From the NCBI GenBank assembly GCA_025594325.1, contig JANHCV010000006.1, positions 124,001-188,000 on the forward strand: DNA of 64,000 nucleotides, given 5' to 3'. Under the pieces are notes generated by a model that had not been told where the DNA came from, ran no database searches, and was given only the letters and a program-made list of their open reading frames with translations. Made by a program: the position numbers and the translations under genes. This document shows, in pieces, positions 25,600-29,905 of this stretch. The DNA is from Blastocladiella emersonii ATCC 22665 (taxonomy: Eukaryota; Fungi; Blastocladiomycota). The number at the start of each line of letters is the position of its first letter. The first letter of the stretch is position 1.

Positions 25600-27585
25600 A
25601 TGCTCGCATCGACCCTGCTCCGCACCTCGACGCGCCGCGCCGTCGCGCTCGGCCGCGCGTCCGTCCCCTTCTCCACCGCATCCTCAACGGCCCGCCCGGC
25701 GTCGACCAAGGCACTCCGGTGGTCCCTCGTCGCGACCGCGTTCGCCGCGGGCGTCGCTGCCGCGACCGTGGGCGGCGCCGGCGCCGACGTGCACAACGAG
25801 ACGGCGGCGACGGCGCCCGCACCCAAGCCGTTTGACGTGACGGGACTGCCCGAGGACAAGCGCGACACGCCCGGGCTGTTCGTGTGGGGCGCCAACGTGG
25901 CGGGGCTCGTCGACCCGAAGCTCAAGCTGACGGACCCGGCGACCGTGCTCCCGTCGTCGGCGAGCGACCCCGCCACGGCCGCGCCCGCCGTCAAGTACCC
26001 GCGCCGCAACCGCGTCTTTGACGGCATGCGGTTCCGCGACGTGCAGTTTGGCACCACGTCGGCCGGTACGCCGAGTCTCTATCCTGCGCGACGGTTCTCG
26101 CGTTTACACCCTCGCCGCCCCTCCGTCTAGTTGCGATCGACGAGCACGGCGACGTGTACCAGTGGGGCACCGGGTTCTGCGGCACCGACGCGAAGCGGAT
26201 GCCCGCAGCCCCGACCAAGACCATCATCGGGCACGACATTGTTCGCGTCGCGCTGTCGCCGACGCACCTGTTCGCCGTGTCGCGCGCGGGCGCCGTGCAC
26301 GCGGTCCCGCTCTCTGCCGCGGACCAGGCCGCCAAGTCGGGCGTGCACCCGGTCGCCGACGCAGCGTCGCTCGCCAAGCCCGCGTCCAAGGGCTGGTGGC
26401 CCTTCACCTCGGGCACGCCCGCGCAGTCGGACCTCGCCGCGTTCCCGACGCTCGCGCTGCCCGCGGGCGACGCCAAGGCCGTCGATGTCGCCGCGGGCGC
26501 CGACCACGTCGTCGTCCTCACCGAGGCGCGCAACGTGTACACGGCGGCGCTCACCGCGCGCGGCGTCCACTGCGGCGCAATCGGCCGCGACGCGTCGCCC
26601 AGCGAGTCGGCGGCGCTGCACAAGGCCGTCCCCGAGCCCGAGACCTCGGGCGCGAGTGCGGGCACGCTGTGGGCCGAAGTCGTGCCCGCCGTCGTTCAGC
26701 CCGTTGCCGTCGACGAGATTGCCCTGCGCAAGGTCCCGATCGAGGCGCCCGTCGCCCAGATCGCCGCGGGTCGCGCGCACACGATCGTGCGGACCGCGGA
26801 CGGCCGTGCACTGGCGTTTGGCAGCAACAGTTTTGGGGTTCGTGCTGCTTGATTGCACCCGTCTCGAACAAGGCTAACCCTCTCCCATACGCTTGTAGCA
26901 ACTCGGCCTCGGCGACTGGTCTCGCCAGAACCAGATCACGCCGCGCCCGACTGAGCTGATCGCGCCGCGCCGCCACGCCAAGGTGATCCACGTTGCGGCC
27001 GCCGGGGACGTTACGGCGCTTGTGACGCACCATACCGCCTTCACCCCCGCCACCGGCGCCGTGGTCCCGTCGCGCGCAGCGCCGCCCGCCGACACGTACG
27101 AGGTGTACACGTGCGGCAACGGGCAGTTCGGGTCGATCGGGCACGGCCAGTTCGTGCACGTGCAGCCGTCGCTGACGCGCGTGCGCGCGTTGTCGTCGCT
27201 GCACGAGTACTCGGACGCGGAGCAGAAGCTCGTCCCGCTCGTCCCGCGCGACCTGGTCCTGGCGCCCGTGCACGCCGCGTGCACGCTGGCGCCTGCGCAC
27301 GGTGGCGACGCGACGGGGGATGCGGGGCAGCGCACCGTCTACATGTGGGGCAGCGGAGCCGATTTCGCGACGGGGACCGGCCGCCGCTCGCACCTCGCGA
27401 CGCCGACGCCCGCGAGCCCGCTGCCGTGGCGGTACGGGTTCCGCGCGGCCGGTGGAGCGGCCCCCGGGAACAAGGCGACGGTCACGGGCCCCGAGAACGG
27501 CGACGGGATCGAGCAGATGGTCGTGCTCCCACAGCAGGCCGTGGCCGTTGGGCCCGGCGTGTCGTGCATCTACACCAAGGCCTAA
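25600..27585 (+). CDS. FMP25: Mitochondrial RCC1/BLIP-II repeat protein, Fmp25-like (exons 25600-26065, 26131-26837, 26899-27585)
   Basis: Arg/Ser-rich presequence plus TM segment; PGLFVWGAN, YPRR..FDG..RD, DVYQWGTGF; RCC1 repeats (IAAGRAHT..., AFGSNSFGQLGLG, YTCGNGQFGSIGHG). Two canonical introns restore the frame. Confidence 0.75.
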
Positions 27586-27662: not shown

Positions 27663-29405
27663 TCATCCCCGCTGCCGCAGAATCGCCTCGGCGATACGCA
27701 AAAACTCGGGCTCGACGACGGCCCACACGGCGACCAGCTCGGGGCTCGGGGTATACTCGCGCGGCGCGGCCCACACCCAGCCGTGGTCCTCGCCCTTGGC
27801 GGCACGCACGGGGTCCCAGGCGCGCGCGGCCCACCGCCGGTTGACGCCGGAGCTGCACTCCCAGACCGTCTTCTTGAGCGTGGGCTCGTCGAACTGCGGG
27901 AACCGCGCGCGGAGGAGCGGGATCACGGGGGCGACGTGGAAGTCGACAGCGTTGAGGAGGAACTGGGACCGCGCGATCGGCGGCGGGAGCGCGGCCGCCG
28001 GTAAATGCGGGATCGGGGCGCGGAACTGGCGCTCGAGCAGCGCGCGGTCCGGGCACGCGGCGAACCGGTGGAACAGCGACACGAGCGCCTGGTCGAGCAT
28101 GCGCATGTCGCCGCGCATCCCGCCAAACTCGCGCCGGCACCGCACCGACCACAGCAGGTCGCGGGTCCACCGCGGCAGCGAGGGTACGATCTCGATGGAC
28201 TCGAGCACCGCGCGCACGTCCGCGTCCGTGCACGGCGCCGCCGCGCCCGTCGTCGTGTCGGACCGCAGGCACCACTCGAGGTCCTGCACGTCCGACGCGG
28301 TGATCTGCGCCACGGCGCCCAGAATGTCCGGGACCACGTCGCGCGGCGGCGGCGAGTAGCCCTTGGACGCGGCGAGCATCAGCCACACGAGCACCGGCTG
28401 CGCGTGCGAGAAGACGCGTGCGTCCTCGAGCGGGATGATCGGGATCCGCCGGATGAACTCGGTGTAGTCGACGCGGATCAGCGCCGTCGCGGTCGCCACG
28501 GTCTGGTCGACGAGGCGACGCCGGATGCACTTCTGCAGGTGCGACTTGAGGAACGGCACGTTGGTGATGGGCGGCTCGGCGATGGGTGTCGGTGCTGCGG
28601 CGGGTGGGGCACCGTCAACATCCATGGGTGCGGGTGCGGGAGCAGCAGCAGCCGTTGCCGATGAGGAAGACGCGGCGGCCGCGGCAGCGAGGTCGTCGAG
28701 CAGCTCCTGGTCCTCGACGAGCGCCTCCTCGGACGCGACATCCTCATCGTCTTCATCCTCCTCATCATCATAATCATCCTCGTCCTCCTCGCCGTCGGTC
28801 CCCGGCACGACCGCAGGTTTGAGGTCGAGCATCGCGAGCTCGTCGCTGAGCTCGTCGAGCGGGATATCCGTGGCGAGGATCACCGACTTGCGCAGGCCGC
28901 GCAGGTGCACGGCGGCGGTCCACGCGACGCGCGGCAGCGTCTGGATCCCGTGCCGCGAGAAGGTCGCCTCGAGCGCGCCCGCCGCCGTCCGCGTCAGGAT
29001 GAAGTGGTCCGGGATCGTCGGATCGACCCCGCCAAAGTACGCGTGCAGGGAGACCTGGCGCGGACCCGTCAGCGGCGACGCCGAGGCCGAAGACGTCGCG
29101 CGGCCCTTGCCCTTGCTGACGACGGGTGGCGACGTGGTGGTGACTGGCGGAGCCGCGGGGGCGGTGGGAGCGGGTGCGGGTTGAGCTTCGGGCTGCGGCT
29201 GTTGCTGCTGTTGTTGTTGTGAGAGCGACAGCCAGTCACCGACGGATCGCACGGGCGCCGGCGAAGGGCCGAGGACGGGCGTCGCGGCGGCCGAGCTGCT
29301 GGCGGCGGGATCGCCCGCGAACGACGCGCACTCGGCGTCGAGGTGCCGGTTGATGGTCGCGAGCGGCACGCGGCGCGAGCACGCCGGACACTCGATGAGA
29401 TCCAT
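27663..29405 (-). CDS. UBZ4 zinc finger + PIP-box + MgsA/RarA C-terminal-like helical domain protein (580 aa, no AAA+ motifs)
   Basis: N-terminal CPACSRRVPLATINRHLDAEC (Rad18-type UBZ4); QVSLHAYF (29057-29034); LKSHLQKCIRR...D...RRIPIIPLED resembles MgsA_C LISAFHKSMRG..D...RRL....ED. Confidence 0.7.
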   Translation of the reverse strand: MDLIECPACSRRVPLATINRHLDAECASFAGDPAASSSAAATPVLGPSPAPVRSVGDWLSLSQQQQQQQPQPEAQPAPAPTAPAAPPVTTTSPPVVSKGKGRATSSASASPLTGPRQVSLHAYFGGVDPTIPDHFILTRTAAGALEATFSRHGIQTLPRVAWTAAVHLRGLRKSVILATDIPLDELSDELAMLDLKPAVVPGTDGEEDEDDYDDEEDEDDEDVASEEALVEDQELLDDLAAAAAASSSSATAAAAPAPAPMDVDGAPPAAAPTPIAEPPITNVPFLKSHLQKCIRRRLVDQTVATATALIRVDYTEFIRRIPIIPLEDARVFSHAQPVLVWLMLAASKGYSPPPRDVVPDILGAVAQITASDVQDLEWCLRSDTTTGAAAPCTDADVRAVLESIEIVPSLPRWTRDLLWSVRCRREFGGMRGDMRMLDQALVSLFHRFAACPDRALLERQFRAPIPHLPAAALPPPIARSQFLLNAVDFHVAPVIPLLRARFPQFDEPTLKKTVWECSSGVNRRWAARAWDPVRAAKGEDHGWVWAAPREYTPSPELVAVWAVVEPEFLRIAEAILRQRG

Positions 29406-29801
29406 GGCGATGCGTGCTGACCTTTGCGTTGGGAGCGAGGCTGAAGGGAGAAGAGAAGCGAAGCGAAACGAGCGCGAGGCGCCCCCAAAACGGCCGGCGC
29501 GACGGAGTGAGTCGAGTCACGTGCGCGACACGTGCAGATGAAGGACGCGCCTTGACGCGTCGCAGCGAGCACGTACCGAGGATCGAACCAAACGCGGGAA
29601 ATACAAGGGAACGCATGTAATGCGGTAACGATGAATAGATTTTAGTGCGGCTCGCGTCCCAGCCCTCGCCGCAAGCCGTTCCAGCGACTGGGCAAGCGAG
29701 CGAGGTTTGCTGCAAAAGCCCTGTCAGATGGAGGGCTGGAAGCCCTCTCTTTAGAGGGGGAAACCAGACCAGGGGGACTCCGAATAGACGGGTGAAGCCG
29801 A

Positions 29802-29905
29802 AGTGAACCGCCTTGAACCGCCGTGAACCCGCCGTGAACCGCCGTGAACCCGCTGCGAAGCCCAAGTCAAGTCGCGTCAAGCCGCGCGAAACCGCCGTGA
29901 AACCA
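29802..29905. repeat. Short tandem repeat (GCCGTGAACC[C])n, about 5-6 copies plus degenerate copies
   Basis: AAGTGAACCG CCTTGAACCG CCGTGAACCC GCCGTGAACC GCCGTGAACC C... read directly; a further GCCGTGAAACC near 29894. Confidence 0.8.

Follow-up and report, generated by a model that had tools for sequence, protein, structure and literature searches.

A UBZ4- and PIP-box-bearing protein of Blastocladiella emersonii with an MgsA_C-like subdomain and no AAA+ module, from a family found mostly in giant viruses

Comparison with WRNIP1, Mgs1 and RarA

The described proteins that bear most closely on the gene presented here are of two kinds. Spartan/DVC1, SNM1A and RAD18 pair a PIP box with a UBZ4 finger, which targets these damage-tolerance factors to ubiquitylated PCNA, and WRNIP1, Mgs1 and RarA are AAA+ ATPases that belong to the clamp-loader clade and maintain replication forks, of which Mgs1 and WRNIP1 reportedly interact with (ubiquitylated) PCNA as well. 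RarA, Mgs1 and WRNIP1 count among the most conserved DNA-maintenance proteins, and their molecular function is still called obscure (PMC8735627), while their C-terminal domain, MgsA_C, has been described as a tetramerisation domain (PMC6374455). Here we compare with these systems a gene at positions 27663..29405 (minus strand) of a 64,000-nucleotide stretch of DNA from the fungus Blastocladiella emersonii ATCC 22665 (contig JANHCV010000006.1, positions 124,001 to 188,000; hereafter the window).

The product of this gene resembles WRNIP1/Mgs1/RarA in its N-terminal UBZ4 finger, which is of the eukaryotic WRNIP1 subtype, and in a helical subdomain that superposes on MgsA residues ~240-350 and has the motif KSxR...RR...ED in common with it. 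Unlike those ATPases it has neither an AAA+ module nor a lid, a four-strand beta domain being present instead, ~200 family-specific residues stand where MgsA_C has its second half, and the protein carries an explicit canonical PIP box. We lean toward reading it as a scaffold or adaptor that works without ATP, is tethered to PCNA and, in cells, also to ubiquitin, and would serve replication-coupled DNA damage tolerance or repair, for which we judge the chances to be a little better than even; the most plausible function would then be that of a reader of (ubiquitylated) PCNA at forks. The features of the gene, from the N- to the C-terminus of the protein, are as follows.

27663..29405, minus strand: whole gene in the list of open reading frames (ORFs), a single exon with an ATG start, 580 codons plus stop and no internal stop
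29325..29396, minus strand: UBZ4 zinc finger (aa 4-27) with CCHC ligands and the HLD aspartate, found by regular expression, phmmer and the family N-terminal profile; predicted to bind ubiquitin
29058..29324, minus strand: P/A/S/Q-rich low-complexity linker (aa 28-116), unconserved and of variable length, from alignment gaps and composition
29034..29057, minus strand: PIP box QVSLHAYF (aa 117-124), found by regular expression and by a column profile over 150 members; predicted PCNA ligand
28869..29006, minus strand: four-strand beta domain (aa ~134-179), from the AlphaFold2 (AF2) model, conserved family-wide
28692..28796, minus strand: acidic tract (aa 204-238), 24 of 35 residues D or E, from composition and alignments
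28572..28691, minus strand: Ala/Pro-rich linker (aa 239-278), partly helical in the model, with a block predicted local distance difference test score (pLDDT) of 46-77 at model residues 130-169
28269..28571, minus strand: MgsA_C-like helical subdomain (aa ~279-379), from PDB profile search, Foldseek, VIA, hhalign and invariant columns
27666..28268, minus strand: family-specific rest of the C-domain (aa 380-580), pLDDT mostly >90, with conserved columns

The likeness of the helical subdomain to MgsA_C was assessed by sequence profiles and with two AF2 models, the first built from 9 sequences (pLDDT 67) and the second, covering aa 110-580, from 150 sequences (pLDDT 87.1, predicted template-modelling score (pTM) 0.84). 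When a 9-sequence profile of aa 270-580 was compared with all PDB sequences, the best three matches were the MgsA/RarA C-terminal fragments 8g28, 2qw6 and 2r9g (E 0.016-0.15), with the same two-helix motif aligned in each. Foldseek against the PDB gave 8g28 as the sole high-probability match of both models (probability 0.96-0.97, template-modelling (TM) score by target 0.60-0.62), the alignment showing 29-31% identity over 87-88 columns. MgsA chains were likewise at the top of the VIA all-against-all comparison with both models; with the better one they comprise 2r9g (Z 8.8, root-mean-square deviation (rmsd) 2.8 Å, 94 aligned, 24% identity), 8g28 (Z 8.6), 2qw6 (Z 7.8), the E. coli MgsA structure 3pvs (Z 7.8) and 3bge (Z 7.7), and 8 of the 48,161 chains reached Z>=5, with the reservation that for helical bundles a VIA Z below 13 can be a chance match. 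An hhalign comparison of the family profile with 47 gammaproteobacterial MgsA C-regions gave P values of 5e-4 to 1e-3 over 50-55 columns; this alignment replaced a comparison of the 9-sequence profile with the single E. coli RarA sequence, which was too weak (probability 0.3) to be of use. A structure search of the ESM-Atlas was uninformative, returning only matches of TM <= 0.30.

The residues conserved in the family point in the same direction, as the invariant S288, Q291, K292, R295, R320, E327 and D328, together with the near-invariant R319, align with the MgsA pattern S..[HQ]K..R ... RR ... ED. The family-specific ~200 residues that follow hold two further invariant residues, D488 and H490, and the near-invariant R424, G428, G429, D433, W515 and S519. 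The window protein has all the family motifs (LKSHLQKxxRR, RRLxIIxxED, YGGMxGD, DFH and W..SS) in a collinear match over its full length. Judged by sequence and model together, these results agree in making aa ~279-379 a remote homolog of the first half of MgsA_C (MgsA residues ~240-350). The initial annotation, made from the DNA letters and their translations, had likened the whole helical C-domain to the C-terminus of MgsA/RarA; that likeness survives as a distant one for aa ~279-379, only the first third of the C-domain, and fails for the remaining ~200 residues and at the level of Pfam membership. For aa 380-580 no convincing relative appeared in the PDB, VIA giving generic three-helix bundles at Z 4.7-4.8. 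The last ~90 aa are arranged as helix-helix-strand-strand-helix, which is weakly winged-helix-like (MarR-type rows, VIA Z 3.8-4.1).

No trace of the ATPase itself was found. Neither the Walker A nor the Walker B pattern occurs in the window protein, as had been claimed from the sequence at the outset, and Walker A is present in none of the 164 family proteins fetched. Pfam assigned no family to the C-domain and no AAA domain when run on the full protein and 36 members, and the AAA lid AAA_assoc_2 (PF16193) matched neither the protein nor any other part of the genome. A hidden AAA exon was considered and rejected: from N- to C-terminus the ORF is collinear with its orthologs in Blastocladiella britannica, Allomyces and Catenaria, no intron-like site emerged when it was scanned for introns resembling the one in the genome's PCNA gene, and E. 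coli RarA has no match on the contig. Since the AAA core, the lid and a Pfam-level MgsA_C all fail, the window protein is, on the grounds of its sequence, not a member of the WRNIP1/Mgs1/RarA family.

The same searches were extended to a separate, canonical Mgs1. The 32.6-Mb genome yielded 0 candidates for PF12002 (MgsA_C), and E. coli RarA (NC_000913) gave only four weak matches to it, all in the Walker region (E >= 4e-4) and resembling generic AAA proteins. Mgs1 is ~35-40% identical to RarA, and a true Mgs1 should therefore match RarA strongly, so that a canonical Mgs1/WRNIP1 is likely absent from the assembly. No other locus in the whole genome matched a RAD18/WRNIP1-type UBZ4 profile either. 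These results bear on the suggestion that the protein is a catalytically dead paralog that regulates or partners a canonical Mgs1/WRNIP1 ATPase, which the initial annotation had offered as a possibility. The domain order is indeed that of WRNIP1 minus the AAA module, with a WRNIP1-type UBZ4 finger, and oligomerisation is the described function of MgsA_C (PMC6374455). However, the PF12002, PF16193, RarA and UBZ4 profile searches turned up no canonical ATPase in the genome, and a dead paralog of recent origin would not have diverged so deeply from MgsA_C, so we give this proposal very little credence. Our results leave open that the window protein covers part of the Mgs1/WRNIP1 role. A natural ATPase-free family that keeps the most conserved motif of MgsA_C, and that is by sequence wired to PCNA and ubiquitin, would offer a way to study MgsA_C alone.

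PIP box, UBZ4 finger and the proposed role at PCNA

The zinc finger fits C-x2-C-x11-H-x4-C at residues 6-26 (C6, C9, H21 and C26, with D23 in HLD), and C6, P7, C9, N19 and D23 are invariant in the 12 cellular members. Taken alone, the window finger matches the UBZ chains of RAD18, WRNIP1 and FAN1 in phmmer at E ~0.4 and the Pfam model zf-WRNIP1_ubi at 18.4 bits (E 0.0033), which is under the 26.4-bit cut-off. The N-terminal profile of the 12 cellular members matches the RAD18 UBZ at E 1.1e-10, the WRNIP1 UBZ (3vhs) at 3.9e-9 and FAN1 at 2.7e-5, and zf-WRNIP1_ubi matches 8 of these 12, the Stephanoeca member scoring over the cut-off (27.6 vs 26.4 bits). The UBZ4 assignment of the initial annotation thus stands, as does its canonical PIP box. 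QVSLHAYF, which is preceded by the low-complexity linker, fits the strict consensus Q-x-x-[LIM]-x-x-[FY]-[FY], a pattern estimated to occur by chance in ~2% of proteins of this size.

The PIP columns are also conserved over the 150 aligned members, with Q in 77 of 120 filled cells, L/I/M/V in 121 of 129, F/W/Y in 120 of 132 and F/L/I/V/Y in 127 of 131, corresponding to Q / x / T,S / L,I / D,H / x / F,W / F,L,I family-wide. Throughout the family the motif holds a fixed place upstream of the beta domain, from which a linker of variable length separates it, and in viral members it is the extreme N-terminus; short linear motifs that serve as tethers typically have such an N-terminal or disordered position and such a variable connection. 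The AF2 model predicts a short helix at L120-Y123. The putative partner is encoded in the genome as well. The PCNA gene (L009:1021-1869, minus strand; contig C1, ~3028.7-3029.5 kb) keeps the lysine equivalent to K164 and has one 60-nt intron (GTATGC...CTGAC...TCTAG) near the 3' end, just before the last beta strand; because this intron is in frame, the uninterrupted PCNA ORF carries a 20-aa insertion.

In the reading that we favour, the protein would be a non-ATPase factor tethered to the replisome. The PIP box would bring it to PCNA and, in cellular members, UBZ4 would bring it to ubiquitin, and the two together would give the protein a preference for PCNA that is mono- or poly-ubiquitylated at stalled forks. 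Its effector part would be the beta domain and the ~300-aa helical domain, in which the MgsA_C-like subdomain probably acts as it does in Mgs1/WRNIP1 but without ATP, through self-association or through binding of a fork-associated DNA or protein ligand. The combination of PIP box and UBZ4 follows the same logic as in Spartan/DVC1, SNM1A and RAD18, which differ in motif order and in carrying a SprT protease, a metallo-beta-lactamase nuclease or a RING ligase as effector.

Several observations weigh against this interpretation. On the side of the helical domain, the VIA scores stay within the range given above for chance matches, the hhalign probability for the family against the MgsA C-regions is 26-33%, and PF12002 matches neither the protein (E<=10) nor the 36 members (E<=0.1). 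An enzyme active site could likewise account for the nine invariant polar residues (S, Q, K, R, R, E, D, D, H), and the sequencing runs that contain the locus are three DNA runs of one study, none of them RNA. On the side of the PIP box, the residues right after its core are modelled fairly confidently (block pLDDT 89), and for this reason the motif might dock on its own protein. A complex prediction of aa 100-132 with the genome's PCNA scored 0.02 against a mark of 0.34 and is evidence neither way, the PCNA used being the unspliced read-through ORF whose 20-aa insertion may have harmed the prediction. Finally, the role of MgsA_C beyond tetramerisation is itself unclear (PMC6374455).

The points concerning the PIP box can be developed into an alternative in which the Q-x-x-L-x-x-F-F motif is not a PCNA ligand at all: it would pack on the protein's own domains or bind another partner such as Rev1 or Mlh1, with recruitment through ubiquitin alone or, in viruses, through some other factor. 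PIP-like motifs do bind several partners, and besides the confident modelling just past the motif it is unusual for classical PIP boxes that the first aromatic position is W in 54 of 132 and F in 55; the complex score stayed below its mark but again speaks neither way. This seems to us quite unlikely nonetheless, given the strict PIP consensus in the window protein and most members, the N-terminal or disordered site and the variable linker.

Giant-virus and cellular members of the family

The family profile was searched exhaustively against 1.84 billion representatives, of which 2,030 (counted at 50% identity) match at E<=1e-3, 1,534 at <=1e-10 and 565 at <=1e-30. Most members are 320-380 aa long. 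Those with names are all "hypothetical" or "uncharacterized", and we found no description of the family in the literature, in keeping with the earlier view of the protein as uncharacterised. The bulk of the family is of giant-virus (Nucleocytoviricota) origin, as follows from the Nucleocytoviricota labels of look-alike Atlas clusters, from 74 IMG/VR family loci that lie mostly in GVMAG giant-virus bins, from viral neighbour genes that include D5 primase-helicase, mRNA capping enzyme, thymidine kinase, RFC1, PolX and aminoacyl-tRNA synthetase, and from Foldseek structure matches in BFVD to Hyperionvirus A0A3G5AAS2 (E 1.2e-13, TM 0.78) and Pandoravirus neocaledonia A0A2U7UC17 (E 1.2e-9). An Orpheovirus protein of 346 aa annotated as RarA (A0A2I2L670) appears in predicted structure to be a weaker look-alike (E 0.026).

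The Hyperionvirus and Pandoravirus proteins and hundreds of GVMAG ORFs are like the window protein in their PIP-like start, their beta and helical domains and the same invariant residues, with hidden Markov model (HMM) E-values for giant-virus members reaching 1e-45 to 1e-80. They differ in being ~300-360 aa long, in beginning with the PIP-like motif, and in having no UBZ4, long linkers or acidic tract. The beta domain is modelled as four strands (E25-30, E36-41, E53-59 and E64-70 in AF2 model numbering) at pLDDT 90-97, and its F135 is conserved in 133 of the 150 members. The acidic tract, correctly noted in the initial annotation, is found among the aligned members only in the Blastocladiella and Allomyces orthologs and is absent from Hyaloraphidium and from the metagenomic (viral-type) members.

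Cellular members come from five genera of Blastocladiomycota, from the chytrids Hyaloraphidium and Rhizophlyctis, from Calcarisporiella and Cymbomonas, and from four choanoflagellates, of which three are represented solely by transcriptome entries. A UBZ4-like finger is present in 15 of the 164 fetched proteins, all of the longer type; those that can be traced to an organism are all cellular, the others being unnamed metagenomic sequences. Because UBZ4 is absent from the giant-virus members, the conserved core of the family consists of the PIP motif, the beta domain and the helical domain, and UBZ4 is, as far as these sequences allow, a cellular addition. In a 95-sequence maximum-likelihood tree, 22 cellular-type rows are split from 73 viral or metagenomic rows with 98% support in the Shimodaira-Hasegawa-like approximate likelihood-ratio test (SH-aLRT), and the grouping of choanoflagellates and blastoclads roughly follows their taxonomy. 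This tree, the product of a quick search, is unrooted, with strongly different base composition on its two sides.

Some viral members bring further enzymes into the same polypeptide. Three ORFs of 495-518 aa on IMG/VR giant-virus contigs, each an uninterrupted single ORF, join a PIP-like start (MITD[FY]F), an AlkB-type 2OG-Fe(II) dioxygenase (PF13532, E 1e-17 to 1e-22), the beta region and the helical domain:

L173:3263-4747, AlkB-fusion ORF
L177:3260-4771, AlkB-fusion ORF
L188:3212-4765, AlkB-fusion ORF

By their architecture these are candidates for a PCNA-tethered dealkylation repair enzyme of giant viruses. They are comparable to replisome-coupled AlkB dioxygenases, of which human ALKBH2 is the textbook case, in that a PIP-like N-terminus and an AlkB-type domain are combined, here with the family module; the window protein, unlike them, has no AlkB domain, and the fusion merely suggests a pathway for the module that they have in common. 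A second kind of fusion is suggested by predicted structures, in which BFVD matches would place the module inside two Edafosvirus proteins named as DEAD/SNF2-like helicases (A0A3G4ZUG2 and A0A3G4ZTR7, E 2e-4 and 4e-3). AlkB repairs alkylated bases and SNF2 translocases remodel forks; the two kinds of fusion, taken with the PIP box and (in cells) UBZ4, point to replication-coupled repair or damage tolerance. A link to repair is also favoured by the replication genes (RFC1, D5 primase, thymidine kinase and PolX) that neighbour some viral members.

The AlkB fusion would also fit a two-enzyme repair protein, which brings us to the possibility of catalysis by the conserved core. Such an enzyme might, for example, depend on metal or phosphate and use damaged nucleotides or DNA as its substrate, and the PIP box and UBZ4 would then do no more than deliver it to the fork. 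Its active site would consist of S288, Q291, K292, R295, R320, E327, D328, D488 and H490 with the near-invariant R424, G428, G429 and D433. That nine residues are invariant across 150 sequences at just 22-30% identity is above what a scaffold usually needs, and the whole model weakly matches two helical oxygenases, 7y3w (Z 7.9 over 201 aligned residues) and 8z4q (Z 7.2 over 207). Yet these matches have 5-10% identity at an rmsd of 4.5-4.6 Å, and the family has a single invariant histidine where the two oxygenases bind iron through several. We regard a Questin-oxidase/PaD-like oxygenase identity as very unlikely. No known catalytic fold or motif was found through Pfam, PDB sequence search or Foldseek against the PDB or the Atlas, and of the 9 invariant residues 7 belong to the motif common with MgsA_C, a described tetramerisation domain (PMC6374455), D488 and H490 being the exceptions. 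An enzymatic core in general is an unlikely alternative to the PCNA-tethered adaptor, though the main one.

A bolder version of the adaptor reading, which we offer tentatively and consider possible rather than probable, would make the module of PIP motif, beta domain and helical domain an old relative of the MgsA/WRNIP1 C-domain that needs no ATP. It would carry the core activity of that domain, be it catalysis or the binding of forks or partners, through the KSxR...RR...ED site, and giant viruses and early opisthokonts would have passed it between them. In Blastocladiales, which on the present searches appear to lack Mgs1/WRNIP1, the UBZ4-bearing version would take over the role of WRNIP1 linked to ubiquitylated PCNA. 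If this is true, the family would isolate what the conserved non-ATPase half of WRNIP1/RarA does. The family would also add an unannotated and very common replication or repair gene to giant-virus genomes, and it is a candidate for a gene that giant viruses and early opisthokonts have shared since ancient times.

The gene and its locus in Blastocladiomycota

The family profile has one match in the B. emersonii genome (32.6 Mb, 21 contigs), which is this gene, so it is present in single copy. Its closest relatives are hypothetical proteins of Blastocladiella britannica (57% identity), Catenaria anguillulae, Allomyces macrogynus, A. javanicus and A. arbusculus. The orthologs of B. britannica (L199:6001-7625) and A. 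macrogynus (L200:6001-7690) each contain a single intron of 65-70 nt, which interrupts the conserved GGMxG|D motif at an identical codon position; the sequences indicate that its absence from the B. emersonii copy is due to intron loss in the lineage. Both orthologs have ordinary eukaryotic neighbours (V-ATPase subunit A, a cyclin, a sugar transporter, a glyoxalase and an RCC1-repeat gene).

With this in mind, it seems highly improbable that the gene is a relic of a recent giant-virus insertion without a function in the host, even though the family as a whole is mostly viral. The ORF is intact, and its GC content of 0.714 and third-position GC content (GC3) of 0.886 match the coding DNA around it, where an ordinary RCC1-repeat gene is its neighbour. 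Orthologs occur in at least five blastocladiomycete genera, the intron position is common to the two orthologs examined, and the cellular copies form a clade of their own with a UBZ4 that is absent from the viral copies. That the choanoflagellate members come from transcriptomes supports a real cellular gene as well. We are dealing with an old resident cellular gene and not with a recent insertion.

The immediate surroundings of the gene in the window include the following neighbour.

26154-27585, plus strand: RCC1-repeat gene, downstream of the UBZ4 gene and convergent with it, in two ORF pieces that are probably exons

The Allomyces ortholog, too, has an RCC1-like gene two genes downstream, and some synteny with the RCC1-repeat neighbour in the window may thus have survived. 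On the upstream side, an ACGCGT box was considered as a G1/S signal and rejected, the hexamer being uninformative because it is present 56 times in the window. At positions 29510-29880, read on the minus strand, ~5 tandem copies of a ~10-11-nt unit (GGTTCACGGCG-like) and a close pair of CACGTG boxes are located ~120 nt upstream of the ATG.

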